A DNA stretch of 46,798 nucleotides from Macrostomum lignano (Eukaryota): assembly GCA_002269645.1 (NCBI GenBank), contig NIVC01004413.1, positions 1-46,798 of the forward strand, read 5' to 3'. Numbering within the stretch: the first letter of the stretch is position 1; each line of letters begins with the position of its first letter. Positions 483 to 46,792 of the stretch are shown here, piece by piece. The position numbers and the translations under genes were made by a program. The notes under the pieces were generated by a model. It was not told where the DNA came from. It worked only from the letters and a program-made list of their open reading frames with translations, and ran no database searches.

Positions 483-9109
<8,627 letters not shown>

Positions 9110-13000: not shown

Positions 13001-16000
13001 TTAAAAGACTAAAGATGGAGACCGACGAGCATTTGGATGACTTAAAAAGATCTATTGAAAAGGGACTTCGCGGACAAGACGCGCTGAAGCCGAAATTTCT
13101 TGAGGTCGTGTCCAGGACAAAGGAACTGCCCGATCACCTTGTGAAGAGCAAACTGCCTCCGGGCTGCGTGTCAAAAAAACTCGCGATTAAATGTCTCTCC
13201 AAGTTTTTCGAATCTGGGACGGACGTGAACGCGCAGAATAATGAAGGCAAAGGAGCTCTGCATTTCGCGGCCGAGGTTGGAAGCAAGGAGATGATTCGCT
13301 TCCTTCTATCAAAAGGGGCGCTTATTGATCTCAAAGACAAACATGGTGAAACGCCAGTTTTTGGTGCCATCAGACGGGGCAAAGAGAAAGTGGCCGAGCT
13401 GCTGCTCGACCGGGGAGCGAGTGCCTCTAGTACGAATAACAATGGACTGTCGGTGTTCTCGCTGGCTGTCGCGGTCAACAGTGTCAAAGTGGTTGAACTT
13501 CTTCGGCAAACGGAGGCCTCACTAAGCATCGATCATGTAGTTGACGAGCTGAAGCTAGAAGACATATTCAAGTTTCAAAACGTTAAGCACTTGGAATTCC
13601 TTCTCAGCAGAGATTTCGATGGAAAGAAGAGAGAAAACGGTATGACCATTCTTCATCACTTGATTTTGGCTGGCGACATTCAACTGTTAAGAGCGGTTCG
13701 AAGGAATCCCAAGTGCTCGTTTCTTAAGGAAATTGTGAACGATCAGGACGCAGATGGCAATTCAGCCTTGCACTTGGCGCTCATGACTGGCAGGCTGGAC
13801 ATGGCTGCCGTGCTGTCTGACCTTCAGTGCCGCACCGATCTGAGGAATGCACGCGGCCACTTGCCACTGCATGTTGCTGTTAGCGAGAACAAACTCAGCT
13901 TGGTCAGGTGGCTGTTTGATCACTGCAAAATAAGTGTTCGACCGGATGCAGAGGAACCAGAAGGCACCCAGTCTCCGCTACACCTTTCTGCAACCATGGG
14001 CAACCTGCTGGTGTTCGAATATCTGCAGCAGAAAAACTTTAAACCTGAAACAGTTTGCAGCAACAAAAACAACTGCGCCCATTACGCAGCCATTCATGGA
14101 AACCTGCACATCCTGGAAGCTATTTTCGGCTGCCCAGAACGTGAAAATCTACTAAAAGAAGAAAACTGCCAGAATCTGACGCCATTGTTATGCGCTATTC
14201 TTAACGGTCACGAGCGCGTTGCCAGATTTCTGTACGAGAAAAACCCCGTCATGCCGCCTACCGCTATAAACCTTTTGGTTCAACGGGGACACCAGCAAAT
14301 GTTCGACTGGGTAAGCAAGACCGAAAGACCCGGGACCGCTTTGCTTTCTGCTGTCTGTTCCGGAAATCTTCACTTGATTAAGAAGCTCATTAGGGACTCA
14401 ACGGATTGGCAAAAAAACATCGACGAGGATCAGCAAGACAGCTTCGCACACGTGGCTGCGTCATTTGGGCATGGACACTTATTGAGGTTTTTGAATGATA
14501 AACAAGTGAATCTGGATCTGAAAAACAAAAATGGCGACACGCCCTTGCTGAAGTGCGCCAGCAGTGGACATCTGGTTTTAATGAAACTGCTTCAAGAGTT
14601 CAACTGCATCGTTGAAGAGAAGAACGAGATGGACAGGAGCATTGTACACCTGGCCAGTATCGGGTCCGACGGCAGAAGGGGTCACCTGAAGGTGTTGAAG
14701 TTCGCCAGCGATCAGCAGCTGCCGCTCGATGAAGCGGACTCGCAAGGCAACACAGGGCTCATGTACGCATGCCGCAGGGGATTCAAGGACATTGCGGAGT
14801 ACCTGGCCAGCAGCCAGTGCGATGCAAACAAGGCCAATTCAAGAAAACTCACTGCAGTTCATCTGGCCGTCCTGTCAGGCCGGTCCGACATCCTGGAAGT
14901 TCTCTACAAGCACGGCGCTGATCTAAACGCGACGGACGCGAATGAAACAACCCCATTGATGATTGCCGCCTACCGCCACCACCTGGACTGCATGAGTTTC
15001 CTAGTGGATCGGCTGGACGAGGCTGCAATCTGCAAACAAAATAAGTTTGGTTGGACGGCTCTGAAGATCGCTCGTCGGTCAGGACTGCCAGCCTGTGCTA
15101 CATCTGAAATGGAGTCTATGCTGAGTAGGAAAATTCAACTGCCGCCGGAAAGCGAGCATAGGTAAGTGGCTTGAGGCCTCTTTTTGTAACTGGTAGCTCG
15201 CGCTCTTAGACTCAATAGCCCTCAATAGCCTATAGAGAAATCATCGATGCATGATTGCATTCCTTCTGAGAGCAATTAGAACAAATTTAAATTTTACAGC
15301 AAAACGATTCCCGAAGAGGAGATTGTCACAGACATCGACATGAATCTGTCCGCTCATCAGCAACGGCAGCCACTGCAGGTAGACAAAAACCTCGCCGTAG
15401 AAGAAAATCCACAGGAGCTGAACAATGATGAGGAAGATCGGTGAGGTTCCAGAAAAAATTATTGTCCGTCTTAACAAAGTGAGAATTTGCTGAGTCTGCA
15501 TTAATCAATCTGGGCTATGGATCAAAAGTCTACAGCAGGATCTAACTTCTGTGTGTTAGTCTGGAGCAGTAACTAACTCTTGTGTGTTAGTCTGGAGCAG
15601 TAACTAACTCTTGTGTGTTAGTCTGGAGCAGTAACTAACTCTTGTGTGTTAGTCTGGAGCAGTAACTAACTCTTGTGTGTTAGTCTGGAGCAGTAACTAA
15701 CTCTTGTGTGTTAGTCTGGAGCAGTAACTAACTCTTGTGTGTTAGTCTAGAGCAGTAACTAACTCTTGTGTGTTAGTCTGGAGCAGTAACTAACTCTTGT
15801 GTGTTAGTCTGGAGCAGTAACTAACTCTTGTGTGTTAGTCTGGAGCAGTAACTAACTCTTGTGTGTTAGTCTGGAGCAGTAACTAACTCTTGTGTGTTAG
15901 TCTGGAGCAGTAACTAACTCTTGTGTGTTAGTCTGGAGCAGTAACTAACTCTTGTGTGTTAGTCTGGAGCAGTAACTAACTCTTGTGTGTTAGTCTGGAG

Positions 16001-18365
16001 CAGTAACTAACTCTTGTGTGTTAGTCTGGAGCAGTAACTAACTCTTGTGTGTTAGTCTGGAGCAGTAACTAACTCTTGTGTGTTAGTCTAGAGCAGTAAC
16101 TAACTCTTGTGTGTTAGTCTGGAGCAGTAACTAACTCTTGTGTGTTAGTCTAGAGCAGTAACTAACTCTTGTGTGTTAGTCTGGAGCAGTAACTAACTCT
16201 TGTGTGTTAGTCTGGAGCAGTAACTAACTCTTGTGTGTTAGTCTAGAGCAGTAACTAACTCTTGTGTGTTAGTCTGGAGCAGTAACTAACTCTTGTGTGT
16301 TAGTCTGGAGCAGTAACTAACTCTTGTGTGTTAGTCTGGAGCAGTAACTAACTCTTGTGTGTTAGTCTAGAGCAGTAACTAACTCTTGTGTGTTAGTCTG
16401 GAGCAGTAACTAACTCTTGTGTGTTAGTCTGGAGCAGTAACTAACTCTTGTGTGTTAGTCTGGAGCAGTAACTAACTCTTGTGTGTTAGTCTGGAGCAGT
16501 AACTAACTCTTGTGTGTTAGTCTGGAGCAGTAACTAACTCTTGTGTGTTAGTCTGGAGCAGTAACTAACTCTTGTGTGTTAGTCTGGAGCAGTAACTAAC
16601 TCTTGTGTGTTAGTCTGGAGCAGTAACTAACTCTTGTGTGTTAGTCTGGAGCAGTAACTAACTCTTGTGTGTTAGTCTGGAGCAGTAACTAACTCTTGTG
16701 TGTTAGTCTGGAGCAGTAACTAACTCTTGTGTGTTAGTCTGGAGCAGTAACTAACTCTTGTGTGTTAGTCTGGAGCAGTAACTAACTCTTGTGTGTTAGT
16801 CTGGAGCAGTAACTAACTCTTGTGTGTTAGTCTGGAGCAGTAACTAACTCTTGTGTGTTAGTCTGGAGCAGTAACTAACTCTTGTGTGTTAGTCTAGAGC
16901 AGTAACTAACTCTTGTGTGTTAGTCTGGAGCAGTAACTAACTCTTGTGTGTTAGTCTGGAGCAGTAACTAACTCTTGTGTGTTAGTCTGGAGCAGTAACT
17001 AACTCTTGTGTGTTAGTCTGGAGCAGTAACTAACTCTTGTGTGTTAGTCTGGAGCAGTAACTAACTCTTGTGTGTTAGTCTGGAGCAGTAACTAACTCTT
17101 GTGTGTTAGTCTGGAGCAGTAACTAACTCTTGTGTGTTAGTCTGGAGCAGTAACTAACTCTTGTGTGTTAGTCTGGAGCAGTAACTAACTCTTGTGTGTT
17201 AGTCTAGAGCAGTAACTAACTCTTGTGTGTTAGTCTGGAGCAGTAACTAACTCTTGTGTGTTAGTCTGGAGCAGTAACTAACTCTTGTGTGTTAGTCTGG
17301 AGCAGTAACTAACTCTTGTGTGTTAGTCTAGAGCAGTAACTAACTCTTGTGTGTTAGTCTGGAGCAGTAACTAACTCTTGTGTGTTAGTCTGGAGCAGTA
17401 ACTAACTCTTGTGTGTTAGTCTGGAGCAGTAACTAACTCTTGTGTGTTAGTCTGGAGCAGTAACTAACTCTTGTGTGTTAGTCTGGAGCAGTAACTAACT
17501 CTTGTGTGTTAGTCTGGAGCAGTAACTAACTCTTGTGTGTTAGTCTGGAGCAGTAACTAACTCGTGTGTTAGTCTGGAGCAGTAACTAACTCTTGTGTGT
17601 TAGTCTGGAGCAGTAACTAACTCTTGTGTGTTAGTCTGGAGCAGTAACTAACTTCTGTGTGTTAGTCTGGAGCAGTAACTAACTCTTGTGTGTTAGTCTG
17701 GAGCAGTAACTAACTCTTGTGTGTTAGTCTGGAGCAGTAACTAGCTCTTGTGTGTTAGTCTGGAGCAGTAACTAACTTCTGTGTGTTAGTCTGGAGCAGT
17801 AACTAACTCTTGTGTGTTAGTCTGGAGCAGTAACTAACTCTTGTGTGTTAGTCTAGAGCAGTAACTAACTCTTGTGTGTTAGTCTGGAGCAGTAACTAAC
17901 TCTTGTGTGTTAGTCTGGAGCAGTAACTAACTCGTGTGTTAGTCTGGAGCAGTAACTAACTCTTGTGTGTTAGTCTGGAGCAGTAACTAACTCGTGTGTT
18001 AGTCTGGAGCAGTAACTAACTCTTGTGTGTTAGTCTGGAGCAGTAACTAACTTGTCTTTTCTGCGCCGGACTCGAGACAGACTGCATAGCTCATAACCCC
18101 CCCCCCCAAACGGGCACCCTGCAGGTCATCGAACCTCGTCGACACCCGGTGCCGCAAACCGAAGCTGGTCGCAGACCTGGCTGTCGTGAGTGGAACGGGA
18201 GATCAGCAGGACGGGCAGAACGAACCTTCAGCTGTCGATGAAGACAAAGATGAAGAAGAGGCTGATTCCTCATCACCGAGACGGCAGTTTCCCTCGGTTA
18301 AGCAGATGTCTGCTATGCCCGTTCCTGGAGTACCGCCTGAACTGCCCAACTGTGCGCAGCAGTGA
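10069..18365 (+). CDS. Large ankyrin-repeat protein (~1,825 aa; 3 coding exons)
   Basis: Exon 10069-15161 encodes dozens of ANK repeats (G.TPL..A, G.TALH.A). The apparent stop at 15163 lies inside a perfect donor (AG|GTAAGT, 15162). Phase-2 splicing to 15300-15440 (SKTIPEEEIV...NNDEEDR) and 18125-18365 (SSNLVDTR...DEDKDEEE...CAQQ*) keeps an open frame encoding an acidic disordered tail. No ZU5, death or kinase domain recognised. Confidence 0.88.
15551..18052. repeat. 31-bp satellite (GTGTGTTAGTCTGGAGCAGTAACTAACTCTT)n, ~80 copies, in ANK intron 2
   Basis: Period 31 (15551, 15582...); near-identical units with a recurring CTGGAG>CTAGAG variant and a few deletions near the right end; no spacers. 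Confidence 0.97.
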
Positions 18366-21564: not shown

Positions 21565-30232
<8,668 letters not shown>

Positions 30233-30973
30233 CGCAGCCTAGAACAGACGATTGACTCAAGAAGTGTTGTCGAGTTGTTGTATGCTGTAACTAACAGGTT
30301 TTTATCTGCCCCCAGTTGGTCATGTAACATGTAAATAAGAGTTTTGACGTTTCACCACAGAAGTTTTTAAATACCTCTGCCGATTTTTTATGCAATTTTC
30401 TTATGCTGAATCGGTCTGCATACAATTGCAGAACCGTGTCGCAAAGCGTGTTGGTCCTTCTGTTAAAGTTTTAAAAAGCATTGCTAAGACACCACGTATG
30501 TAATCTAAAGTATTTTCTTTTCAACCAATAAAATATTTGAAATCTATTGAACTTTTAATCTGAGTCGCTGCATCAGACAGTGAGATTTCCCAGTAATACG
30601 TGCATTCAGGTCCCCTCCGTGTGTCAAGAACCGAGCGATAACTTACTGAAATTGCATTGAACCACATTCAGTTTTTTAAAACTATTTTCTTCAGAAAAGC
30701 GCTGATATCCTCAGTTACGAATCTATATCTCAGAATTTAAAATAATCGATTACATAGGTACGTGCAGATGCTTTCAGTTTTACGAAGACAAGTTTTGCGT
30801 ATACTCGTATCTGTTCAACCCCGACAAGGAAAAAGTTGGTATGTACACTAAGAGCGAAATAAAGATTAAAGGACAAACCAAAGCTTTAGAGTTACTGAGT
30901 CAACCGATGAAATATTCAATTTACTTCGAAAGCTTTCACATCCATTGCAAAGACACTAAAATCTGTCAATCGA

Positions 30974-32307
30974 TCAACCGAAGACAACGGTGTTGATATC
31001 GCCGCGGTTGCTCATCTTCCTGTAGACGTAGCGGTCGCTTCTCATCGTGAACCACACGTCGCAGCCCCAGCAGATCGAGCCGACGAAAGCCGCGTCCGAG
31101 CAGCTGTTGCCGATCTTGGAGCGGATCAGATTGGTCCAGGACTCGGCGTGGCTTCCGGAGCCCACCCGCTGAGCGGCGTCAAGCGCGGCGTTGCCTTTGG
31201 CCCGAGTAAATCTGGAAGATCCAGGGTTAGAACTGGCCACAACGACGTTGCGACCTCCGTGAGTCCTGAACCGAGCGTCTCCGCCACAGTAGGACACCCA
31301 GTGCTTGTCACCGCCAGAGACGTCCTTGTACGAAAGGGCGATCCAGTAACGACGGTCAAACTTGTCAGCGAGGAAGCGGTACATATGGCCTGAGAAGTCT
31401 TTGTTGCTTAGGTGTCTGTTATCCAGGATGACGCGACCAATGTCGGAAGTCATCTGAGAGTGGTACTTGCTCAGTACACCGTTCTCAACCTGCTGCATGC
31501 GGGTGAGCATCTTTTCCATCCGGGTGTCCCACAGTGCCTGAGTGACGGTGGCAGCATGATCTCCGTGGACCATCTTCTCGTAGGCGATCTCGAGCTGAGC
31601 ACCCCTCATGACCAGACGCTGCATGGCTAGCAGAAAGTTCATCACGTTACGCCTGTGGTTCTGGGTGTAGTGGACAACTGCCACTCCAAGGTTGTCGGAA
31701 ATGGTGAGGTCTGTTTCCACGACGGCCTGGTACAGTTTAAGTGCGGCAATTGGGTTTTTGCGGAAGGCGGTAAGGAACTGACGCTTGTGGACTTCGCGCG
31801 TCATGGCGTCGTTAGCTCCGACGTACTATCCAGCAGATGTGTGGTAGCCACAATGAAGGACTCGTAGTTGGCGTAGGTCACGCGAGTGGTTTGCCACTCG
31901 ATCAGTCGCTTGACCTCCTCAAGCTGTAGAGAGATGCTGTCTAGCTTGGCGTGCACCTCCTTGAACTGTTCGCGCATGAACTTCATCTCGGCGGATTCTT
32001 GCGCTCCCAGACCGCCAATCAGGTTGATGATGGCAATTACGAAGGACAGAACCTTTGAGACGACTTGGGCCACGATGTAGACCTTGGGAAACGCCTTGAA
32101 GATGTCTGAGTTAAAGATGTCAACGAAGTTCTTGACAGCCTCAAGAGCCTTCTTGGCTGTCTCCAAGTCATCGTTGACAGGCAGCGCCATCAGCTCTCCG
32201 GCGGTCTCCTCCATCCTCAGCACCATGGCACCATCCCCTGGCGACACCACTTCGGTGGCGGAGGCGACAGCGCACACAGCAAGAAGTCCAAGCAGAAGCA
32301 GCTTCAT
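30974..32307 (-). CDS. Secreted rapunzel/SE-cephalotoxin-like protein, copy A (intronless; 1-bp frameshift near 31826)
   Basis: Signal peptide MKLLLLGLLAVCAVASA. ORFs 32307-31801 and 31804-30974 join into a full homolog of copies B and C if one base is restored (..HLLD-x-YVGANDAMTREVHKRQF). Confidence 0.8.
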
Positions 32308-32863
32308 TGTCTATTTTTGCTCCGTCTTAGTCAAAGCCCAACTAGCAACCAGAAATTTATAGCGCTTTGTCCGTTAAAAAATAATTCCAGCCGCAGGTTT
32401 ACTCGTCTCACGGGTTGTCAAGCGGATAGTTGGACAATTTCGAAACGGAGCCCCAATCTGGAAGATTGGCACCGCAGGCCATGTGACTCAGTCACACAGC
32501 AAAAATGTATTGCTGCAGCATAAAGATAGGCTACTCTTCCACTGCAGTTAGTTTTATGTTTTTCTAGAATTTCACCTTGTACAACTTTTTTAACTCACAT
32601 TTATTAGACTCATTGTGATCGAAATAAGGTAAGTCGTAATTTTTTACCTCGTTATTCTCTATAAACCGATATGCTTTTAGCCGTGAGACTTCAATAAAGA
32701 AATCCAAGGCTAATAAAATTAATCAATCCGGCTAAATTGACATTATCTTTCTGCATAAGAATTCTTTCCAAGTTAGCAACTGATGTCGAAATCCCAAGAA
32801 AATTATTTTAGCACTAGGGGGAGGGCTGTCATCGGTTTCAAGACAACTTGGAGAAACTTGACG

Positions 32864-32913
32864 GCTGATAAGAACAGCCGCTTGCTGATAAATCCTGGAG
32901 TGATTTTATAAGA
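32864..32913 (+). promoter_or_regulatory. Putative core promoter of copy B: two GCTGATAA (GATA) motifs and TATAAGA
   Basis: GCTGATAAG 32864-72, GCTGATAAA 32884-92, TATA-like box ~55 nt before the ATG. Copies A (TATAAAT, 32355-61 minus) and C (TATAAAA, 36370-76 minus) have TATA boxes at similar distances. Confidence 0.45.
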
Positions 32914-32964
32914 CAAGTAACAAATTGAATTGGTAATTGAAACCGAAGGCAAATCTTGAAAGCC

Positions 32965-34293
32965 ATGAAGTCGCTACTAATTGGTCTGGTAGTCCTGTGC
33001 GCCATCGCCGCATGCGCGCACGCAGGCCGAACCGAAGCTGCGGCAGTGGTAGTCCGCTCGGAGGAGACCGGCCTTGACGTCTTTTCGGCGCCCTACAACC
33101 GAGATCTCGACATTGCTAAAGATGCTCTAGAAGCAGTGAAAGAGTTTATTGAGTTTTTTAATTCGGATCTATTTGAAGAGTCTGGTGTAAAGGAAATCGC
33201 AGAAGTAGTCTCCAAGGTATTTACCTTCGTAACCTCCATTATCGACCTGATCCAGGGTGCTCAGGGTGGTGAGTCGGCCGAGATGAAGTTCCTTCGTGAG
33301 CAGTTCGCTCAGGTTCACGCAAAGTTGGACAGCATTTCGCTGCAGCTCGATGACGTCAAGAGACTTATCGAGTGGCGAACAACGCGAGTGATGTACGCGA
33401 ACTACGAGACCTTCATCATCGCGGCCAGCTCAATCCTCAACAATTACGTGGCGGCACCTGAGAGCTCCCGCGAGGTGCTGAAACGCCAGTTCATCGCTGC
33501 ATTCCAGCATAACCCGCTCGCTCCGCTGAAGCTGTACCAGGCAATCGTAGAGAAGAACTTCGTGATCGCCGAGAACCTCGCTGCCGCGGTGGTCCACTAC
33601 ACCCAGAACCACCGACGCCACGTGATCAACTTCTTGCTGGCCATGCAGCGCTTGATCATGAGGGGCGCACAGCTCGAGATCGCCTACGAGAAGATGGTCC
33701 ACGGAGACGGAGCCGGAAACGTGGCCAAGACCGTTTGGGACGGTCGCATGCAGAAGCTGCTTAGCCGCATGAAGCAGCTGGAGACTGACGTAAAAAACCG
33801 GTACCACTCTCAGATGACTTCCGACATTGGTCGCGTCATCCTGGATAACAGACACCTAAGCAACAAAGACTTCTCAGGCCATATGTACCGCTTCCTCGCT
33901 GACAAGTTTGACCGTCGTTACTGGATCGCCCTTTCTTACAAGGACGTCTCTGGCGGTGACAAGCACTGGGTGTCCTACTGTGGCGGAGACGCTCGGTTCA
34001 GGACTCACGGAGGTCGCAACGTCGTTGTGGCCAGTTCTAACCCTGGATCTTCCAGATTTACTCGGGCCAAAGGCAACGCCGCGCTTGACGCCGCTCAGCG
34101 GGTGGGCTCCGGAAGCCACGCCGAGTCCTGGACCAATCTGATCCGCTCCAAGATCGGCAACAGCTGCTCGGACGCGGCTTTCGTCGGCTCGATCTGCTGG
34201 GGCTGCGACGTGTGGTTCACGATGAGAAGCGACCGCTACGTCTACAGGAAGATGAGCAACCGCGGCGATATCAACACCGTTGTCTTCGGTTGA
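32965..34293 (+). CDS. Secreted rapunzel/SE-cephalotoxin-like protein, copy B (intronless, 442 aa)
   Basis: ATG at 32965, signal peptide MKSLLIGLVVLCAIAACAHA. ESAEMKFLREQFAQVHAKLD, KRQFIAAF, LYQAI, RRHVINF and WDGRMQKL recall the rapunzel-family motifs as I remember them (ESKEAEYMKEQF..., LYNAV, RRAVEDF, WAEKMKVV). C-terminal KFDRRYWIALSYKDVSGGDKH domain. Family assignment is from memory, not from a search. Confidence 0.82.
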   Translation: MKSLLIGLVVLCAIAACAHAGRTEAAAVVVRSEETGLDVFSAPYNRDLDIAKDALEAVKEFIEFFNSDLFEESGVKEIAEVVSKVFTFVTSIIDLIQGAQGGESAEMKFLREQFAQVHAKLDSISLQLDDVKRLIEWRTTRVMYANYETFIIAASSILNNYVAAPESSREVLKRQFIAAFQHNPLAPLKLYQAIVEKNFVIAENLAAAVVHYTQNHRRHVINFLLAMQRLIMRGAQLEIAYEKMVHGDGAGNVAKTVWDGRMQKLLSRMKQLETDVKNRYHSQMTSDIGRVILDNRHLSNKDFSGHMYRFLADKFDRRYWIALSYKDVSGGDKHWVSYCGGDARFRTHGGRNVVVASSNPGSSRFTRAKGNAALDAAQRVGSGSHAESWTNLIRSKIGNSCSDAAFVGSICWGCDVWFTMRSDRYVYRKMSNRGDINTVVFG

Positions 34294-34946
34294 TTTCTGT
34301 CTGATGTCTGCAGTGCATTGTTGCTGTAGAGTGACGAATAATCTGTCGCTTTTTGGTTCAAACGAAATACACTTGTGTTGCTGTTTGAATGTAGGGATTA
34401 GATATATATATATCTATATTGGCCAATTTTATCCGTTTCAATGCCTTAGTTATTTTTTAATTTAGTTAATGTTATTTATTACATTGCCAAATTGTATTAC
34501 AAAAAAAGACGGAAAAAACAGTAATTTTGAGCATTTGCGTTTGACACAACCACGGTTTCTATAAAACAGCTATACTTCCAGTTTACATGCATTATATTTT
34601 TGACTCCCTTCTCGTCAAACTGTTTGTCATTTTTTTATAAAAGATGAATTAAAAATGCAGTTGAAGCTACTGTGATAGGCACATAATGCATATTTCATTA
34701 AAACTAATGCTTAAAGAATTACATGACTACCTCTGCATCGGACCACTAATTGACTAAACATTAGAAAGAACTCTGAAAATTAGGAAAGCAACAGCTAGGG
34801 CAAAAACCATGGTTGAACCAGAATTGAAAGCTTTTTCAACAAACGAGCCAAGTGTATTTTTCCATGAAAAAAACGAAACACGCTTCCATTCTTTTCCAAA
34901 CACAAAATTTCGCAACTAGCTAGCTATATGTCATTTTGCAAGAGTC

Positions 34947-36314
34947 CTAGCCGAAGATAATGGTGTTGATGTCGCCCCGGTTGCTCATCTTCCTGTAGAC
35001 GTAGCGGTCGCTTCTCATCGTGAACCACACGTCGCAGCCCCAGCAGATCGAACCGACGAAAGCCGCATCCGCACAGCTGTTGCCGATCTTGGAGCGGATC
35101 AGATTGGTCCAGGACTCGGCGTGGCTTCCGGAGCCCACCCGCTGAGCGTCGTCAAGCGCGGCGTTGCCTCGCGGCTGACTGAACCTCGATGATCTCTTAT
35201 CTGCGCTGGCCACCACGACGTTGCGGCTTCCGTGAGTCCTAAATCGGAGATCTCCGCCGCAGAAGGACACCCAGTGCTTGTCACCGCCAGAGACGTCCTT
35301 GTACGCCAAAGAAAACCAGTTGCGATGATCGAACTTGTCAGCGAGAAAGCGGTACATATGGCCTGAGAAGTCTTTGTTGCTGAGGTGCCTGTTGTTCAAG
35401 ATGACGCCACCAATGTCGGAAGTCATCTGAGAGTGGTACTTACTCTTTATCTCGTTTTCCAGGCGCATCATTCGAATCAAAAGCTTCTCCATCCGGCCAT
35501 TCCAAACGGTCTTGGCCACGTTTCCGGCTCCGTCTCCGTGGACCATCTTCTCGTAGGCGATCTCGAGCTGTGCGCCCCTCATGATCAAGCGCTGCATGGC
35601 CAGCAAGAAGTTGATCACGTGGCGTCGGTGGTTCTGGGTGTAGTGGACCACAGCGGCAGCGAGGTTCTCGGCGATCACGAAGTCCTTCTCTACGATGGCC
35701 TGGTACAGCTTCAGCGGAGCGAGCGGGTTATGCTGGAATGCAGCGATGAACTGGCGTTTCAGCACCTCGCGGGAGCTCTCAGGTGCCGCCACGTAATTGT
35801 TGAGGATTGAGCTGGCCGCGATGATGAAGGTCTCGTAGTTCGCGTACATCACTCGCGTTGTTCGCCACTCGATAAGTCTCTTGACGTCATCGAGCTGCAG
35901 CGAAATGCTGTCCAACTTTGCGTGAACCTGGGCGAACTGCTCACGAAGGAACTTCATCTCGGCCGACTCGGTGCCTTGCAGGTGTTGAATTAGGTCGATG
36001 ACGGATGTGACAAATGTAAAGACTTTGGAGACGACTTCTGCAACCTGGGTGACGTTGCCGTTTACCTTTTCAAAGATTTCAGAGTTGAAAAACTCGATGA
36101 ACTCTTTTGTGGCCTCAAGAGAGTCCTTTGCGGTGTCGAGGTCTCGACTGTTCGTTGCCTGAGCAAAAACATCAACACCTGTATCCTCGGTTCGGATCTC
36201 GATGTCTCCAGCAGCTTCCTTTGTAATGCCACCATCACTTGCAGCTTCCAGAAGGCCCGTGCCATCTGTGGCAGCGGCGCACATGCTGAGCAGACAAATA
36301 AGAAGTATTCTCAT
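34947..36314 (-). CDS. Secreted rapunzel/SE-cephalotoxin-like protein, copy C (intronless, 455 aa)
   Basis: ATG at 36314, signal peptide MRILLICLLSMCAAA; full-length paralog of copy B. Confidence 0.82.
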   Translation of the reverse strand: MRILLICLLSMCAAATDGTGLLEAASDGGITKEAAGDIEIRTEDTGVDVFAQATNSRDLDTAKDSLEATKEFIEFFNSEIFEKVNGNVTQVAEVVSKVFTFVTSVIDLIQHLQGTESAEMKFLREQFAQVHAKLDSISLQLDDVKRLIEWRTTRVMYANYETFIIAASSILNNYVAAPESSREVLKRQFIAAFQHNPLAPLKLYQAIVEKDFVIAENLAAAVVHYTQNHRRHVINFLLAMQRLIMRGAQLEIAYEKMVHGDGAGNVAKTVWNGRMEKLLIRMMRLENEIKSKYHSQMTSDIGGVILNNRHLSNKDFSGHMYRFLADKFDHRNWFSLAYKDVSGGDKHWVSFCGGDLRFRTHGSRNVVVASADKRSSRFSQPRGNAALDDAQRVGSGSHAESWTNLIRSKIGNSCADAAFVGSICWGCDVWFTMRSDRYVYRKMSNRGDINTIIFG

Positions 36315-37326
36315 TTTCCCTTTTGACTTAACCTGGTTGGATTGCGAATCCACTTTTTACAGTCGAAGCTTTTATAGTGGAAATATTGATTTGAAAAGTT
36401 ATCATTATTTTTTTCTTATCAGCTTGTCGTGCGCCTTTAGTGTGATTCCTTCTGGGCTTTTCTAGCGCTCCTTCTGTGCGAGTTCCTATACTGTAAGAGA
36501 TAAACGAATCTTCCTTGCCTAATACATGTATCTGTAAATCCTAGGCTGCAGTCCTAGCTTGCTGCAGGTTCTTCGATAAGTGGTTCGACCTAGCCATGCC
36601 ATTATTTAATTCTATTTTATTAGTCTGCCTTTAATCTGATTTCAGCAAAGCTTTTTTGGCTAAATTATGAATTAACTTGTTAAAAATCATGGGTTACGAT
36701 TATTTATCATATGTACAGTCTTCATCAAGGGAGAAGCGGCGTGGAGCTAAGACGACCCCAGCACAGTGGTCTCAACTCCAGTGTTCTTCAGAGCGAGGTG
36801 CCTGCCTATCAGCTTCTGTGCGGCAGATACGCGTCGAAGGCAGCTGCTCAGCGATCGAAAAGTTATTTTTCACTTTTTTTTCACTTTTTCAGGATAGCCT
36901 AGGCAATTCAACCCTAATTCGGTCCCTTTCTGTCGTAGAACCGACTCCAAACCTGCAGTCCTGGAATGCAAGGCCCAGCTTGTGGCTCAATATCTTTATT
37001 CTGAAATCGTGTTTCTGTATTGGATTTGGAGTGCCTGCGTACCGACCCTCTGCTATGTGTAGCGTCGCCAGTGTACACTTGGCGGTCCCCGTCTCAGAGT
37101 GTGTTGGGGTGGGGTTGATGTGCGTGAGGCGTTGTTGAGTCAGAGAGTTGGAGAGAGAGAACATTGATTTAATTTAATATATATGCAATAATTTAGCCAC
37201 AGGGCTCATTTACCTGTTTTTTGTTAAAGTCTAACCCTCAGATTTTATTAGACTTAATTAGCGGAACGGCCGGAGGGCAAGGATTGGAGAGCACGAGCAA
37301 AACATCCCAAAAACCCGGACAAAGGA

Positions 37327-38339
37327 TTAAAAAGTAGGGTAGACGGCGACGGGGCGAGTCAGGCGAGCGCTAGGAGGTGCCGACAGCACACGGTTGACCA
37401 TTGGGCGCAGGAGACGGAGGCAACCTCCCGACTGCGGCAGGTAGCGTGAAACGGCGCCGCTGCGCCAGCCGCCCAGCCGCTTGATCTGCTCCACGTCGAG
37501 GCCGCTGTCGAACGCCAGACAGGCGCCACCCCGTCGTAGAGAGTGGCCTGAGAAAGCTGTCGCCGCCCAACCCGCATCTGTCAGAGCCCGAGCGAGGCGG
37601 CGGTCGAATTGACGCGATGACATCGGGCACCAGCTTCCGGCGATGTGGACGCAAAACAGCCGAGTGAGCGCCGGCGCAGACCGCAGCTTGTTAGTCTGAA
37701 AATGCCGCCGCAGGGCTTGGACAGGGCATAGTGGGTGGCTTCCGAGCGCTGGCAGCACCGCCTCCTGGTAGTCTTGTCCGCATTGGTTGGTCTTCGACTG
37801 TCGAACTCGGAGTCTCCAGCACTGACTATCGGCCTGAGTGTCGCCGACGAGAATGGAGTGGCGCCCGCAGACATTTGCTTTCCTGAGAAGCGCCCAGAAG
37901 CAGCAGAGCACGGCGGCCCAAAAGGCGGCGTCTGCAGGGTCTCTTGGGTTCACCTGGTTTGCCAGTGAAAGCAGAACAGCCGGGGTGATGGGGTCTTTCT
38001 GCTTGACTGAATGGCCGCTTGTCCGTTTGGCGCTCTTGACTGCCAGATCGATCAGGCCGGACTTGGTGATGTCGGGGAGTAGCGCCAGCTTGAAGCTCCA
38101 GCTGATGGCCGCCAGGTGTCCACCGAGGCTACCGGGTGCCACGCCGCGCTTAGCCAGGCGTCGCACATACTCGACCAAGTGCACCGGGGACGCCGCTAGT
38201 GGCTGAACACCTTCGAGGTTGCAGAAGCGCTGCCACTGTTCGAGGTTTGAAGCGTACGATGCCCTCGTACTAGGAGCCCAGGCGTCGGCGAGAAAGCGAA
38301 GGAGCGGCCCGGGTAGGCGGGAGGCAGGAGGCGCCGGAC
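37327..38339 (-). CDS. Tyrosine recombinase of the YR retrotransposon
   Basis: Frame extends upstream of the called ORF (…LADAWAPSTRASYASNLEQWQRFC). Catalytic residues present: R (LLRKAN), K (SKTNQ), HxxR (GHSLRRG), W (LGGWRS), Y (VSRYL). No ATG; a strong splice acceptor precedes it at 38340-41. Confidence 0.9.
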
Positions 38340-40148
38340 CTGCAAAAGCAAAAGGGAGGCGGAGGCAGGGCAGAGTGCGTGGCGCGAGATGCAGCAGGAT
38401 TCAGCAGCTAAATCATGCAGGCTACGGTAGAAGCGGAGAAAGAAATTCTGCGCCCCGCTTCTAGAAGCAAGGCGAGAGGCCGGGTCCGCCAGGACCTGGA
38501 AGGCGCCCGGAACGTGAAAGGCCCGCAGCCGCAGACCCCACGCGTCGCAGGCAAGCGACAGCGTGTGCAGGAGCCGGTTGACGTCGTTACATGGCGAGCT
38601 GAGCTTGTTCAGCGCACCGACAGCCGCTGAGCTGTCGCTGTACACGACGATGTCCGCACCGGCGAAGCGGCCCGGGGCCGCGAGGATGCTGAGGACAGGC
38701 GTGATGGTCTCCTTAACGTTGATGTGGGCCGAAGCAAAACGGCCACCAGCGTCGTTCTTCCAGTTGATGTAGAGCCAGTCGGATTTATTGGCCTCCCGAA
38801 CAATGCAGGCACCACCCGAGTTGCAGGCGTCAGTCTCGATGACGATCTTTCGAGCGTAGCGAGGCCAGATGGGCGCGCAGCCAACGGACTGAAGGCTTCT
38901 CCTCCACCAGTGCAGCAGCTCAGTGAGGTGCGGGGTCAGCCGCAATTTGTCCCCAGGTCTAGTCGCCCGGCTCGCCAGCATCAGTAGAGGGCGGATGGAA
39001 GCTCGGCCTTTCCTGGTCACGCTGCTCACCCAGGACAGCTTGCCGCAGATCCGCTGAAGGTCGCGCTTGCTGATGGCACCGCGTCGATGCAAGCAGCTCC
39101 CAAGTGCGTCTTCGAGTGCACTGAGCTTGGCCACTGGGATGCTCAGCATCCCCGACTCTGTGTCAATCAGGACGCCCAGGAAAACCGTGCGCCGCGACGG
39201 CCCGCTAGACTTCTTTTCGTTGATGGTGAAACCGAGGCTCGTCGCCAGGCTCCTCAAGCTCTCGTAAGCCTCGACACAGGACTCGTAGGTGCTCCCGGCC
39301 ACAGCGAAGTCGTCGAGGTAGCCAACGCAGGTGAACTCGCGCCGTTGCATCATGCGCACCACCGCCTTAGACAGCCTGTTGAAATGGTACACCGAGGCCG
39401 CAGCGCCGAAGCTCAGCCGGGTGTCGACCAGGTAGGTAGGCTCGCTGTCGCCGCTAAATTGCCATTTGATTCCCAGAGCGTCGAGAGAAGAAGGATGAAC
39501 ACCTACAGAGCGATACGCCTCCTTGAGATCGATCTTGGCCGTGAAGTCACCGGGCTTGAGTTGTGAGCAGAGGCCGCTAACCGTTTCAAACTTAATCTTG
39601 TGGTCTGCGATAAAGTGGTCGTTGACCGCACAGCCTTCCGGACGACTGCAGTCGTGGATGATACGGACTCCACCGTCCTCTTTCGGGATGGCACCAAGCG
39701 CGGAGATCTTGCACGGACGTCGGCTGACTGACACATACCGCCCGCTGGCGATCTCACGCTGCAATTGCTCTTCAACCAGCGTCTTGTACTCACTGGCGGA
39801 CGAGTAGTTCTCAACTTCGGAAGGCTTAAAATCTGTTTCAGTAGTGAGCGCGAAGCCGTTTTGGACTCCGTCAATTAAAAAAGGCCCATCGGGGTCGCCG
39901 TCTAGCTCCTTCGCCCAGGCATTTGCGTCAAGGGAGCCACTCGGATTGAAATTGATGTCGCGAATGGAGTAAAAACTTGGGATTAAAATTTGCGGCTGCC
40001 AGCTTGCCGGGGCCACTGGAGCCGCGGCTATTCGTTTTTTGCCGCGTGTTGCGTCTCGCCGTGGTCCGAGCGCAAGCAGACCCGGCACGCATGAGTGTAC
40101 TTGCAATTCTGGAACTTGCAGCCACCACGGGTATTGAACTTGAGGCAC
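38196..40148 (-). CDS. Reverse transcriptase-RNase H of the YR retrotransposon
   Basis: KIDLKEAY, SFGAA, GYLDDF, FLGVLID; RNase H ETDAC..HINVKE..YSDS..HVPG..ADPASR. Confidence 0.93.
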   Translation of the reverse strand: MPQVQYPWWLQVPELQVHSCVPGLLALGPRRDATRGKKRIAAAPVAPASWQPQILIPSFYSIRDINFNPSGSLDANAWAKELDGDPDGPFLIDGVQNGFALTTETDFKPSEVENYSSASEYKTLVEEQLQREIASGRYVSVSRRPCKISALGAIPKEDGGVRIIHDCSRPEGCAVNDHFIADHKIKFETVSGLCSQLKPGDFTAKIDLKEAYRSVGVHPSSLDALGIKWQFSGDSEPTYLVDTRLSFGAAASVYHFNRLSKAVVRMMQRREFTCVGYLDDFAVAGSTYESCVEAYESLRSLATSLGFTINEKKSSGPSRRTVFLGVLIDTESGMLSIPVAKLSALEDALGSCLHRRGAISKRDLQRICGKLSWVSSVTRKGRASIRPLLMLASRATRPGDKLRLTPHLTELLHWWRRSLQSVGCAPIWPRYARKIVIETDACNSGGACIVREANKSDWLYINWKNDAGGRFASAHINVKETITPVLSILAAPGRFAGADIVVYSDSSAAVGALNKLSSPCNDVNRLLHTLSLACDAWGLRLRAFHVPGAFQVLADPASRLASRSGAQNFFLRFYRSLHDLAAESCCISRHALCPASASLLLLQVRRLLPPAYPGRSFAFSPTPGLLVRGHRTLQTSNSGSASATSKVFSH

Positions 40149-41020
40149 ACGGGCGCACCTTGGATCACCGGAATCTTCCTATCCATGCGAGAACGGGCAT
40201 GTTGTGGAGTCTGCTGCGGGGCGATGAGGTGCCGTGCCACCAGCGAGAAACTCGGTCGCGCCCAGTCTTGCATGCCCGCCTGCTGCTCTCTTCTAAATGC
40301 GTCGTCGAACCGCATGATCCTGGTGGTGTCGTAACCTGCCTCGACTAGCTCACCGATCTGCACATTGTACTGCAAGTACTGCCGAACGCCTTCCAGGTCG
40401 AGCTGTCCCCTAGAGATCAGGGCGTCGAGGATGCGCGCGTTGCCGACTATCCACTGACCGATTCCCAGCGATTCGGGTTTAGGCTGATTGGCGGTTGGAT
40501 GCAGCATCTTTTCCCTACGACTCGCCGACGCCGTCCGAGGGTCGAAACCGCAGAAATCCGCAACGACGAGTGGTGCCGCCCGTAGCCCTAGTTGAGCTAC
40601 TGAGGGTTCGAGCCTGGTCTCGAACCCGGGACCTCTGAGCATACTTGGGATATTCATGTCGCTACTACAATCAGAGGGCTCATTAAGAAGCTGTTGGTCC
40701 ACCTCACCTGGTCTAAATCGGCCTTCCAGCTGCTGGCGCATTGCTGCCGTCTCCGATTCCAGGCTAGCTATCTTCCGCCGGAGCTCTGCTAGGTCCAGCG
40801 CCTCCCCTGCCTCCAGCCGTTGTTGCTGCTGCTGCCGCCGACCTTCGCTGTCGGTTTCCGCGGAGTTTGACGCCGCTTGTTCCCGCCGACTAGCTGCTTC
40901 GCTCTGGTTCATCGCAGTGGAGAGTCTGCTGACCAGGTCTTTCTTGTAGCCGTGCGTGCTCAGGCCCCTATCACTCAATTCTTCACGTAGCTGATTTACA
41001 GTCATCCTACGCAAACTCAT
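40028..41020 (-). CDS. Gag-like ORF1 with N-terminal SAP motif and C-terminal CCCH-type zinc finger
   Basis: MTVNQLREELSDRGLSTHGYKKDLVSRL matches the SAP pattern (L...L..RGL...G.K..LV.RL); C-terminal CLKFNTRGGCKFQNCKYTHACRVC. Confidence 0.85.
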   Translation of the reverse strand: MSLRRMTVNQLREELSDRGLSTHGYKKDLVSRLSTAMNQSEAASRREQAASNSAETDSEGRRQQQQQRLEAGEALDLAELRRKIASLESETAAMRQQLEGRFRPGEVDQQLLNEPSDCSSDMNIPSMLRGPGFETRLEPSVAQLGLRAAPLVVADFCGFDPRTASASRREKMLHPTANQPKPESLGIGQWIVGNARILDALISRGQLDLEGVRQYLQYNVQIGELVEAGYDTTRIMRFDDAFRREQQAGMQDWARPSFSLVARHLIAPQQTPQHARSRMDRKIPVIQGAPVCLKFNTRGGCKFQNCKYTHACRVCLRSDHGETQHAAKNE

Positions 41021-41354: not shown

Positions 41355-44300
41355 ATGGACTCCAGGAAAAGAGGCGTGTTACGAGCGACGGTCACCAGAC
41401 TGGCACAGAAAGCCGAAGACCTGCTCAAAACAGATGCTGCTGAAGATGAAATCGACAGCGTTCTAGAGGCTCTACGGTTCAAGAAGCAGCAGCTCCAAGC
41501 AGCAGATGAAGAGCTCGCCGCGGAGGTTGACGAGAAGGACGTGCAGGCTGAAGCAGAGACGACAATGGAGTACGACCTGCTGGCTGGCAAATTGATCTCA
41601 AACCTCACCAGACGGCTCCAGGAGCTTCAGACCGCGCGGACCGGCACGCCGCAGGCAACAAACATGCTGCAGCCATACAGACGACGACTTCGTCCAAGTC
41701 TTCGGAAGAGAATTCTTCAACGACAAGGACTCAGACTGCCATCAGGTTGCCAAAACTGCCGCCACCGTCATTCAGTGGCGATCGGACCCAATGGACGGAA
41801 TTCTGGGACCGCTTCAACTCCAGTATCCATGACAACCCGAGCCTGAGTGTCGTCGACAAATTCAGCTACCTGCAGTCGTGTCTGTCTGGGAAAGCCCGAA
41901 ACTCGATCGCTGGTCTCAACATCACGAAGGACAACTACCATATCGCCATCGACAACCTGCAACGACGATTTGGATCCCGCAACGGAGCCGTGCGCGAGCA
42001 CCTGGCAAAGTTCTCGGTGCTGACCTGCTCCAGTTCGTCGGCACAGCACCTGAGGAATTTCTACGACCAAGTCAATGGAAATGTCCGCAGTCTGACGAAT
42101 CTCGGGGTGAGTGTCGAATCTTACGAATCCATGTTGCTGCCCAACTTGCTGGCGAAGCTGCCGGAAGTCGTTCGTCTCGGGATGCTGAGAACTGCTCGGA
42201 TTGCTTCCGTCGGTTATTCCTTTGGTAGCAGCTTGTCGCAGATGAGGGATGGCAATGGCTTAGATTCTGTGACGGAGTTTCTGCAGGTCTTGGAAATGGA
42301 GATTTTAGTCCGGGAGGAGGCGGCCCTTGGAGCTGCAGGGCAGACGTCCGGTTCCAATGGAGCGTCCAAGACTGCTGGTGAGAAACAGACAAGGGATGGC
42401 GGCACAGTGGCTGCGCTTCACACGAAGGTCAAAAAGGTCAGCACGGCTTGTCCCTTCTGCGAAACTGAACATGCTCCAGAGAAGTGCACTCGCCTGGTAG
42501 ACGTTGCGGCACGACTCCAGTTTTTGAAGGAGCAGAGGCGTTGCTTCAGCTGTCTCTGCAAGGGACACAGCGTCAAGACCTGCTACCACAAGAAGCAATG
42601 TGAATTCTGCCAGATGAAGCATCACCCAAGTCTCTGTAGCGCACGCATGGAGAAGCTGCAGGGTAAGGGTGGACCGAAGGCACCCGGCTCCACACTTGGA
42701 AAGGTGGGAGAAGACCGGAAGAAGTCCGAGCAGGCTGCTGCACAGAATGTGAAGAGTCAAGAAGTGAAGACCATGGCTATGGTGACAAAAGCTCAAACAG
42801 TGATCCTTCCAACAGCGGGAGCTGTACTGATTTCGACTGTTAACAATCAGGAGACTCCGGTGCGAATTCTCTTTGACTCTGCAAGCAACCGTTCGTTCAT
42901 CTTGACCAGCTTGGCTGAGAAGATGGGGCTCCAGGTCATGGGCAGAGAGACGATGGAGGTGACAACATTCGGTGGCACAGAGGCCAAGGTGCTGCAGACT
43001 GCGATGGTCGAGTTCAAGCTTCGGAAATCTGACAGCACCGCCCAGTTCACAGTGCGCGCCAACACAGTGCCTTACATCTGCTCTCATCAGCCAGTTGTCA
43101 GCAGCTTGTGCATGAAGCACTTTCAACACCTCGACATGGCAGACTGGGACATCGGTGGTGAACAGAATCCCGAGATCAGTATCCTCATCGGAGCTGACCA
43201 ATTCTACGACCTCATCACAGGTCAAGTGATTCGCTCAGAGGTCGGCTCCGGTCCAGTTGCCGTATCCAGTCAGCTCGGTTGGTTGCTGTGCGGGTCACTG
43301 TCAGATGGGATCGCCGCAAGTGAGCTAGAGACCAGGTCAGAGCAGGTTCTTCTCTGCTGTGCTCAAGGAGCGGAGAAAGGTCTGGACAGCAGCACCATCG
43401 AGGCGTTCTGGACTTTAGAAGGTCTCGGCATCAGAAGTGCAGCCGAGCCTGATCAGCGTCCACTGACTCTGAATGCCCAGTTCCAAGAGGGTCGCTACTC
43501 AGTTCAGCTGCCGTGGAAGATTCCCAAAAAGGAATTAAGATTGCCCGACAACTTCGAGGTAGCGTTCAAGAGACTAAAGAACAATCTGACGAGGCTGCGT
43601 CGTGAGCCTGCGCTTCTTCAGGAGTACCACCGCATTCTGACCAGTCAGAAGGAAGCTGGCGTAGTCGAAGAAGCTCCAGATGGGACCAGCGATCTCATCC
43701 ACTACCTACCCCACCGAGCCGTAATCCGTCCTGAAGCTGAATCGACCAAAGTTCGAGTGGTTTTCGACGCGAGTGCCAAGCGAGATCAGTGCAGTCCATC
43801 GCTGAATGACTGTCTGGAAACAGGAACCTGTTCGTTGGCCGAGATTCCGCGACTGCTTCAGGCCTTTCAACTTCATCCGATCGCCTTGACTGCCGATATT
43901 GAGAAGGCTTTTTTGCAGATCCGAATTGCAGAAGACGATCGCGATGCTCTACGATTCCTCTGGCCACGGGATCCCAGTCAAGCTGATTCACCTCTCGTTG
44001 TTCTGCGCTACGCTGCTCTGGTGTTCGGACTCACCTGCTCACCTGCCGTCCTGGAGACTGTCATTCAACACCACTTGGCATCTCACCGAGGCCAGCATGC
44101 AGAGTTCGTGGATAAGGTGTCCAAAGAAATCTATGTGGACAACCTGATCTCTGGGTGCGTGGATGAACAGCAGGCCCTGGATCTCATCCAAAAATCCCGG
44201 CACATATTCCAACAGGCTGGAATGAATCTGCGACACTGGCAGTCCAACAGCAAGAATGTATTGAAAGCGGTTCGCGCCAGCACACTAGACAGTGATGTTC

Positions 44301-46792
44301 TTGCTCCGGCGTTGTCGGCGGTGACAAAGGACATCACGGAGGACCCCTCCAGCTATTCAGCCGCCTCCTTGGGCGAAGATGGCGTATCGTCAAAAGTCCT
44401 CGGGCTGCGATGGGAGACAGGATCGGACGTGTTCGTGCTGCAGTTTTCTCCGCCAGAAGATTTGCTCAAGGCGTCGCCCTCCAAGCGTGTCGTGCTACAG
44501 CTGCTGGCCCGTGTCTACGATCCTCTGGGCTTCCTGGTTCCGCTGCTTACGTTGCCGAAATCGATGTTCCAGAAGCTGTGCGTTGAAAAGATTGCTTGGT
44601 CTTTTCGCTCGCTAAAGGAGCCGATTAAGCAGCAGTGGCTGAAGTGGTTGCAGGAGATGCTGGCAGGTCGATTTCAAGTTCCAAGGTTGGTGCTTTCGGC
44701 GACGAAGGAGGTCGAGGAGATACAGCTGCATGGGTTCTGTGATGCGTCAATCAAATGCTATGCGGCGTGTCTTTACCTGCGAGTGCAGTACACCGATGGT
44801 TCCGTCAGCTGCAACCTGGTGGCCGCCAAGGCGAGAGTGGCTCCACTGTCGGTTTTTTCAATTCCTCGGCTCGAACTCCTGGGTGCCTTGATACTCGCCA
44901 GACTGTTGACATCATCCATGAGTCAGTATCCTCATGTTCGCCAGGTGTTTTGCTGGACAGACAGTGCCGACACGCTCTACTGGATCCGGCAGCACAGACC
45001 CTGGAAGCTCTTTGTTCATAATCGGGTGACGGAGATCCGCCGCCTGGTGCCAGAGGATGCCTGGAGACATGTCCCAGGCGAGGAGAATCCGGCGGACGTT
45101 GCATCTCGAGGAACATCAGCGAGCAAGTTGCAGGCAGACAACAGCTGGTGGCACGGTCCAGACTGGCTGGCACGACCTCCTGACGATTGGCCCGACCAAT
45201 CCTTTCTCAGCTTACTGACAGCGGCAGTTGCCGAGGAGCAGAAGACACAGGCAAACCGTCCAGTTGTTCTGCTAACTGAAGCGGTCCTGACATCAGTCTA
45301 CAGGACATCAGTCAATGACACGAACTTCTCATCCTGGATCAAGCTGATTCGGGTGACAGCCTATGTCCTACGCTTCGTCAGAAACCTGCAAGCTAGAACT
45401 TCTGCAGCGGGGGAGGAGCGAGTGGGACCACTGGCTGCAGCAGAAGTCCTTGAAGCTGAAGAGCGCTGGCTGCGAGAAGTGCAGAGACGGAGTTTTCAAG
45501 CCGAAATTGCTCACCTTCAGGAGTCAGCGGCCAGTACAGATCTCAGCAGGCAGTTGAATCTTTTTCTCGACAACAAGAGTATTCTCCGAAGCCAAGGTCG
45601 ATTGAAGGAGTCCAACGCCTCTGCCGAGGTTGACTGTCCGATTCTGATCCCGAACAAGTCACACCTGGCCGAGCTTCTTCTCATCTGGGACGCTCACGCC
45701 AAGGTTCTGCACGGGGGAGTGCCCAGCACTCTTTGTAAGCTGCGAGAGAGATTCTGGCTAATCAGAGGAAGACAGCGAGTCAAGTCGATCCTGAGAAGGT
45801 GCTTTGTCTGCAGACGTCTTCAAGGACTACCATATGCAGTGAAGCAAATCCCAGCCTTACCTGAAGCACGCGTGAAGTCTGGGAGAGCCTTTGAGTGGTG
45901 CGGACTCGACTACTGCGGACCTGTCAAACTGATGGAGGACACAGAGATCGAGAAAGGCTATATCCTGGTTTTCACCTGTGCGGCCACGCGAGCCCTTCAC
46001 CTGGAACTGGTGAGCGACTTGACGACCGAGACCTTCCTGCGAGCCCTCCGACGGTTCTGTGCTCGGAGAGGAATTCCCAATCTCATCAGTGACAACGCCA
46101 AGACATTCACCAAGGCTGCCAAAATACTTCAGGCGACAAGTTCAAGACTTCTGCGCCACCAGGAAAATCACCTGGCAATTCATCGTCGAACGCGCACCGT
46201 GACAAGGAGGCTTCTGGGAGCGACTGATGAGGGACATCAAGCTGGCTTTGCGCAAGACCATCCTCAACGCAACCCTGACGCTGGACGAACTGCGGACAGT
46301 GCTAATGGAGGTGGAAGCGGTGCTCAACAGTCGGCCTCTACTCTACGTGGATGCCGAAACCAACGGAGAAGTCCTGACGCCGGCGCACTTTCTGGTCCTG
46401 CAACGGCTAACGGCGGAGCCAACTTCTAGCGGTACGCCCGAGCTCCTGCTGCCGTTGCCAACACTGCTGAGGCGAATGCGCGCCAGACTGCAAGCCTTCT
46501 GGGACTGCTGGGAGCGACAGTATCTGACCAGCCTGCGAGAACATAATCTAAGTCCCAAGCATGGCGTAACTCGAGAAGCTACGGCCGGCGACATCGTCCT
46601 GGTGAAAGGTGAAGCCGGGCAGCCGAGGCTTACCTGGTGTACCGGTCTCATCGAGTCGGTGCATCCTGGCCGAGACGGGCGGTGAGATCTGCAACGGTTC
46701 GAGTCGCGCCCAGACCTGGCCGCGGTCCCAGGAGATGCTTGATTCGCCGACCGGTGGAGAACCTGATTTTGCTGGAAGCTGTGACTGAATGA
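41355..46792 (+). mobile_element. BEL/Pao LTR retrotransposon gag-pol, decayed (3 frameshifts, 1 nonsense codon); 3' LTR lies outside the window
   Basis: LPKL..PSFSGD..W.EFWD (DUF1759-type gag), three Cys/His knuckles, protease ILFDSASNRSFI, RT YLPH..TKVRVVFDAS / ADIEKAFLQI / YVDN, RNase H LHGFCDAS..HVPGEENPADVASRG, integrase H..H..C..C, GLDYCGP, SDNAKTF, and a DUF5641-type tail FWDCW..QYL..LRE. Frameshifts near 41650, 46138 and 46680; TGA at 46200 replaces W in RAPWQGGFWER. Confidence 0.93.

Follow-up and report, generated by a model that had tools for sequence, protein, structure and literature searches.

How can one gene be nearly identical to one neighbour over part of its length and to its other neighbour over another part, in a family of paralogs that are otherwise deeply diverged? 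This question is raised by a contig of the flatworm Macrostomum lignano (NIVC01004413.1, assembly GCA_002269645.1, Mlig_3_7), analysed over positions 1 to 46,798 of the forward strand (hereafter referred to as the window). Between 30.9 and 36.4 kb, the window contains three paralogous intronless open reading frames (ORFs), A, B and C, which lie in alternating orientation and encode predicted secreted cephalotoxin-like (CTXL) proteins. As judged from sequence comparison, the mosaic structure of these genes is very probably explained by recurrent interlocus gene conversion among three old paralogs. Interlocus gene conversion is a known process, and no new mechanism is revealed here.

Organization of the locus

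The three genes and the spacers between them are as follows:

30974-32307, minus strand: gene A, cephalotoxin-like paralog
32308-32964, no strand: A-B spacer, 657 bp, between genes placed head to head; unique sequence, outside all repeats
32965-34293, plus strand: gene B (ATG at 32965), 442 amino acids, intronless, with a signal-peptide-like N-terminal helix
34294-34946, no strand: B-C spacer, 653 bp, between genes placed tail to tail; unique sequence
34947-36314, minus strand: gene C, 455 amino acids counted from the ATG (MRILL), intronless

A tblastn search with B across the window revealed no copy beyond A, B and C. Each of the three genes is complete, with its own start and signal sequence. 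In the window, gene A carries a 1-bp deletion (TT to T at about 31824, changing GATAGTTACG to GATAGTACG), which divides it into two ORFs (31801-32307 and 30974-31804). The extra T is present, and gene A is whole (444 amino acids), in both of the further copies of the locus described below, the frameshift being found in the window contig alone. This deletion may be genuine, turning one subgenome copy of the gene into a pseudogene, or it may be an indel error in the PacBio consensus. Outside the near-identical tracts, the ratio of nonsynonymous to synonymous divergence (dN/dS, Nei-Gojobori method) is about 0.1-0.2, indicating that A, B and C are constrained coding genes.

Tracts of near identity between inverted neighbours

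The repeat finder reported two inverted pairs linking B to its neighbours, I1 (30973-31798 and 33469-34294) and I2 (33271-34034 and 35206-35969), in agreement with the original prediction, in which the order A(-) B(+) C(-) made B an inverted repeat of both. The tracts, the patch between them and a third block are listed below:

30974-31466, minus strand: A-B tract, A arm, 493 nt, one difference from the B arm
33801-34293, plus strand: A-B tract, B arm, encoding two helices (residues 280-314) and the entire C-terminal alpha/beta domain (residues 319-442)
33271-33738, plus strand: B-C tract, B arm, 468 nt, four differences from C; residues 103-258, in the helical region
35502-35969, minus strand: B-C tract, C arm, the reverse complement of B 33271-33738
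33739-33800, plus strand: B-specific island, 62 nt, unlike A and C, with nine sites at which A and C agree and B differs
34046-34289 in B (plus strand), 30978-31221 in A and 34951-35194 in C: putative older three-way block at the 3' end, 92% identity (repeat finder)

Both long blocks had been recognized beforehand, and their limits proved exact. Base-by-base comparison identified a single synonymous difference between the 493-nt arms of the A-B tract (T at 33936 in B, G at 31331 in A), and four differences in the 468 nt shared by B and C (B positions 33309, 33543, 33556 and 33588). The identity between A and B, which had been reported to halt at the stop codon, runs to one base beyond it.

Gene B is therefore composed, by residue, of its own sequence at 1-102, C-type sequence at 103-258, its own sequence again at 259-279 and A-type sequence at 280-442. 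The A and B proteins are 100% identical over residues 280-442, and the B and C proteins differ by a single change over residues 103-258 (N198 in B, D in C). Outside the tracts, 20-45% of sites differ between the paralogs, the segments flanking the tracts are 55-75% identical, and the 5' and 3' flanks of the genes could not be aligned (a gapped global alignment gave about 52% identity). The tract ends are abrupt and coincide with places at which homology falls: the stop codon, a divergent patch at 33252-33270 and the B-specific island. The 62-nt island is read as an unconverted remnant of the original sequence of B.

Over the last 70 or so codons, a sliding-window comparison of C with A or B gives a synonymous-difference proportion of 0.09-0.23, versus 0.5-0.9 elsewhere. 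This stretch appears to mark an older, partly decayed tract common to all three genes.

Statistical support for the mosaic structure

There were 312 informative sites at which B matches just one of its neighbours. The best single breakpoint gave a chi-square of 138.7, a value reached in 0 of 20000 permutations. The longest runs of pair identity extended over 42 variable sites for A and B and 72 for B and C (0 of 20000 permutations each), and the longest run for A and C, of three variable sites, was not significant in the permutation test. Synonymous divergence (dS) by segment, estimated by the Nei-Gojobori method, followed the same partition. Within the B-C tract, dS was 0.029 between B and C versus 1.94 between A and B, as expected from the earlier remark that A is clearly divergent over this block. 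Within the A-B tract, it was 0.009 between A and B versus 0.41 between B and C. Taking both tracts together, the dS values involving the third paralog ranged from 0.40 to 1.9. Over the N-terminal 117 codons, dS was saturated (>2) for every pair, consistent with the observation that the three N-termini differ.

The permutation tests and the contrast in dS rule out chance and uniform divergence. A uniform dS along the genes had been named in the original prediction as grounds for rejecting conversion, but the segment-by-segment estimates show dS to be strongly non-uniform. The sharp tracts, the absence of comparable permutations and the very low dS inside the tracts thus support the patchwork gene conversion that had been proposed.

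Two further copies of the locus and the timing of exchange

The locus is also present on contigs NIVC01000661.1 (hereafter referred to as L001) and NIVC01002837.1 (hereafter referred to as L003) of the same assembly. Each is colinear with window positions 29675-37015 in a single alignment (about 96.7% identity), and the two are 98.4% identical to each other. Three diverged copies are to be expected, because M. lignano is a hidden tetraploid, of which the sequenced DV1 line has extra large chromosomes, and Mlig_3_7 holds 180 Mb of duplicated blocks at an identity of at least 95% (PMC5704211, PMC10733133, PMC5730564). A, B and C keep their order and orientation throughout the three copies. The original prediction had also invoked inversion between the arms, but all three assembled copies are colinear and none has a flipped spacer, which argues against it.

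The nine sequences (three genes at three loci) were aligned together, and the column numbers given here refer to that alignment. The mosaic boundaries are identical in all three copies, indicating that the main tracts are older than the divergence of the copies. Several variants found only in the window copy are nevertheless common to converted partners: columns 408, 518 and 752 in B (33325, 33435 and 33666) and C (35915, 35805 and 35574), and column 1349 in A (31004) and B (34263). The probability of three sites coinciding among the four copy-specific sites of B and the five of C in the 468-nt tract was 2.3e-6, as computed before demanding the same base. These partner-shared variants indicate that conversion went on after the copies had diverged. 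L001 has the B/C differences at 33543, 33556 and 33588 in common with the window. They lie between converted patches, and their retention in L001 too indicates that homogenisation was patchy and involved more than one event. At 33556, B of L003 has the C state, and at column 642 B of L003 is alone in having the C state. The claim that conversion is recurrent is thus upheld, both by the copy-specific variants and by the older three-way tract at the 3' end. Overall, the alignment points to a layered, patchy and ongoing exchange among A, B and C, greatest between inverted neighbours. Column 740 (B 33654, C 35586), in a stretch conserved in all three genes, has a window-specific variant in A and C but not in B, which hints at either an occasional short exchange between A and C, the direct-repeat pair, or a parallel mutation.

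Between the window and L001, substitutions amount to 1.1-7.7% in non-coding DNA and 0.15-1.8% in coding sequences, with 0.15% for A and 0.60% for B; the whole of gene A has two synonymous differences. This low coding divergence may reflect exchange between homeologous copies too, or codon-level constraint.

The best account of these patterns is that non-reciprocal homologous repair has repeatedly overwritten coding stretches of about 0.5 kb between mutually inverted neighbours. The result is three tracts: the B-C tract in the middle of the helical region, the A-B tract reaching from residue 280 as far as the stop codon, and the putative older one common to A, B and C at the extreme 3' end. As for the molecular route, general principles of recombination suggest double-strand-break repair of the synthesis-dependent strand-annealing type, mostly without crossover, for which the inverted neighbour, on either the same chromatid or its sister, would serve as template. 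Inverted pairs could swap freely, since a crossover would merely flip the spacer between them; between A and C, which are in direct orientation, it would delete B.

Protein family and predicted structure

Precomputed matches to Pfam PF27742 (CTXL_M) were found on annotated products of the locus (P0001, P0002 and the L003 genes). A Pfam-A scan of A, B and C with a library version lacking the PF27742 model gave nothing significant. An exhaustive HMMER search identified 235 representative relatives, mostly of 420-450 amino acids, and a second homolog search, word-indexed with a profile, added only one protein. CTXL relatives occur in annelids (Owenia), molluscs (Pinctada, Mytilus, Lottia), nemerteans (Lineus), M. 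lignano and other animals. The cluster of one full-length homolog (P0019, E 9e-37) includes a member named 'cephalotoxin-like protein [Mytilus edulis]'. SE-cephalotoxin-like and Rapunzel sequences have been linked, and are present in non-venomous animals too (PMC6315956). The PF27742 matches connect A, B and C to these relatives, but the closest relative outside the locus is only 36% identical and no activity is known for the short members. A, B and C are assigned to the predicted secreted CTXL proteins, toxicity being an annotation by name only. The more distant M. lignano paralog P0011 is a singleton that belongs to no cluster, indicating that the family does not generally share the inverted-triad layout.

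An AlphaFold2 model of B, based on a 38-sequence alignment, had a mean confidence (predicted local distance difference test, pLDDT) of 85.4, and the C-terminal domain modelled alone reached 92.7. The model comprises the following parts:

Residues 2-18: signal-like helix
Residues 21-42: disordered stretch
Residues 44-314: helical region
Residues 319-442: alpha/beta domain

The C-terminal domain of CTXL proteins has the conserved motifs K..WR.W, KH and GRN..VAS.

In a Foldseek comparison with the PDB, the whole model had no significant neighbour (the best was Vip3, E 0.014, with a template modelling (TM) score of 0.24-0.29; the ClyA-type toxins HblL1, PaxB, MakA and AhlB followed at E 0.19-0.30 and TM about 0.1), and neither did the C-terminal domain. 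A profile search against PDB sequences returned weak coiled-coil noise only. An identity as an alpha-helical pore-forming toxin of the ClyA/Hbl/Mak/Vip3 kind is not supported, as this comparison showed no significant structural likeness to its solved members. The earlier proposal that conversion shuffles a helical 'pore' module and a C-terminal 'receptor-binding' module is not borne out, on two counts. The start of the A-B tract, at residue 280, falls within the helical part, two helices ahead of the border between the helices and the beta domain (about residue 316), and the absence of a significant PDB neighbour for the whole model or the C-terminal domain leaves both labels without support.

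Gene models and the adjacent mobile element

The converted tracts have misled the public annotation. Two gene models, P0161 in the window (30974-36338) and P0001 in L001 (10001-15539), join a 5' portion of C to a 3' portion of A over B, at differing junctions, and gene A has no gene model of its own. The models of B (P0160, P0002 and P0162) begin at internal methionines, and hence lack the signal peptide. The possibility that P0001, which begins as C-type and ends as A-type, is an alternative chimera of independent origin was rejected: the model spans C2 to A2 over B2, with junctions in stretches in which A and C are identical.

Beyond gene C, homology between the window and L001 ends at 37015, and that between the window and L003 at 36954. 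The following ORFs lie past these points:

37327-38184: tyrosine recombinase ORF (Phage_integrase, E 2e-6), 1 kb from C
38196-40148: reverse-transcriptase ORF, on the same strand and directly after the recombinase
40028-41020: SAP-domain ORF, next on the same strand

Together, the ORFs from 37327 to 41020 look like a DIRS-like retroelement, which is probably an insertion specific to the window copy. The position of the recombinase, past the end of homology and beside a reverse transcriptase, places it outside the conversion system.

Alternative explanations of the mosaic

PacBio reads were assembled with Canu, and the result was polished with Pilon on the basis of Illumina and RNA-seq reads (PMC5730564). 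The near-identical tracts might thus be an artefact, in which reads from the paralogs were collapsed or multi-mapping Illumina or RNA-seq reads caused Pilon to overwrite true differences. The polishing with short genomic and RNA-seq reads, the restriction of the identity to coding sequence and the resemblance of the 1-bp indel in gene A to PacBio consensus errors are all compatible with such an origin. We nevertheless consider it highly improbable, because the divergence of 20-45% outside the tracts blocks short-read cross-mapping and Pilon cannot rewrite 0.5 kb. The three separately assembled contigs, moreover, have equal boundaries together with paired variants of their own, which random multi-mapping across six such tracts would blur rather than create. 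The three B/C differences preserved in the window and L001 also speak against an artefact, as does an older ML2 gene model (P0159), which runs C into antisense B with the B island followed by an A-type end. It might alternatively be supposed that selection at the nucleotide level holds the blocks identical without any transfer, as they fall where the protein family is most conserved; but the third paralog has a dS of 0.4-1.9 over those same codons, so the synonymous sites are free to change, and constraint alone cannot yield paired copy-specific variants. This idea is effectively refuted, with a probability close to nil. A single chimeric origin without ongoing conversion, in which a one-time segmental duplication or illegitimate recombination created B by joining copies of the middle of C and the 3' end of A, would account for the equal mosaic boundaries in the three copies, since the main events must predate copy divergence. 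It is very unlikely all the same: the diverged N-terminus of B and its 62-nt island fit an old gene overwritten in patches, the partner-shared copy-specific variants demand transfers after the copies split, and the older three-way 3' tract bears witness to earlier rounds of exchange.

The possibility raised in the original prediction, that the inverted triad is a device diversifying effectors in a cassette-like manner by recurrent conversion or inversion, to which help from the adjacent tyrosine recombinase might be added, draws on the alternating orientation, on the status of both neighbours as inverted repeats of B, on the recurrence of conversion and on the recombinase ORF 1 kb from C. Most of the evidence runs the other way, however, and we give this possibility little credence. 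There are no alternative chimeras or flipped spacers in the three copies, which share the same boundaries. Conversion lowers variety rather than raising it: the three genes have two types of middle and two types of C-terminus, and the net effect is homogenisation. The apparent chimeras P0001 and P0161 are gene models splicing C to A over B; the recombinase adjoins a reverse transcriptase in a DIRS-like setting, past the end of homology with L001 and L003; and A, B and C are all complete, each having a start and a signal sequence, which leaves no silent cassette among them. It is accordingly most doubtful that the triad is kept because the germ line or soma of M. lignano reshuffles the helical and C-terminal parts of CTXL proteins by conversion and spacer inversion. 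If it were, worms or lineages would carry different chimeras, and the locus would be a counterpart, in an animal, of effector variation by cassettes.

Recurrent interlocus gene conversion also has points weighing against it. The nearest outgroup reaches only 36% protein identity; a single PacBio data set underlies all the copies, and polishing with Pilon may have erased or copied a few single-base differences inside the near-identical tracts; and the conversion events are known from sequence comparison, none having been directly observed. Since comparisons outside the tracts are saturated and the nearest outgroup is so remote, donor and acceptor cannot be assigned. B may have been assembled from pieces of A and C, or B may have supplied a piece to each of them; the two readings are equally allowed. 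The description of B as a mosaic therefore stands as regards its own N-terminus, C-like middle and A-like end, but B as acceptor is only one reading, as it may equally have been the donor.

Comparison with known systems

RHD and RHCE are tail-to-tail genes that form hybrid alleles, and the Drosophila hsp70 genes include inverted duplicates; both undergo interlocus conversion. The locus described here resembles RHD/RHCE-type conversion in its tracts of a few hundred bases with sharp ends and near-zero dS in old diverged paralogs, and in its inverted neighbours in cis, hybrid genes and lineage-specific variants common to paralogs. It differs in that one gene trades with both flanking neighbours, over different segments. 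The large palindromes of the human Y chromosome undergo arm-to-arm gene conversion, and like them the locus has inverted arms around a unique spacer that are near-identical through what would be intrachromosomal conversion. Unlike those of the Y chromosome, its arms are of about 0.5 kb, are coding only and lie within otherwise saturated genes, with flanks and spacers that belong to no palindrome. Cassette variation is known from trypanosome VSG, Neisseria pilE/pilS, Borrelia vlsE and bacterial shufflons. In these systems, as here, segmental conversion of related coding sequences gives mosaics, but the locus has no silent donor cassettes, no single expression site, no recombinase conserved with it and no variant arrangement among its three copies.

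In the literature, no paper was found on conversion in flatworm cephalotoxin-like proteins, on gene conversion in Macrostomum or on the four gene identifiers. The locus provides a well-controlled case of ongoing interlocus conversion in a neopolyploid flatworm, a new example of a known process, in which three copies serve as natural replicates that date the exchanges. The tracts will confuse read mapping, expression counts, the design of RNA interference or knock-out experiments and orthology calls. The analysis also flags CTXL proteins as an uncharacterised, widespread animal family with a confidently predicted fold that has no solved relative.

Other features of the window

An ORF of 1560 amino acids (41747-46429) with DUF1759, aspartyl protease, reverse transcriptase, Pao peptidase (A17) and integrase zinc domains is the polyprotein of a BEL/Pao-type long terminal repeat retrotransposon. 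Two 213-amino-acid ORFs (25964-26605 and 27665-28306) were considered as a related pair and rejected, as they are unrelated to each other. An unbroken ORF of 1698 amino acids (10069-15165) consists of ankyrin repeats over nearly its whole length (Ank_2, E 5e-188, 23 stretches matched). Tandem arrays are present at 15527-18052 (31 bp, 82 copies, 98%) and 22991-24247 (40 bp, 31 copies, 90%), with smaller arrays at 1234-1763, 5366-5656, 6561-6879 and 8350-8949, the last of these being (TAGT)n. The 40-bp array occurs in L001 too, at another length.

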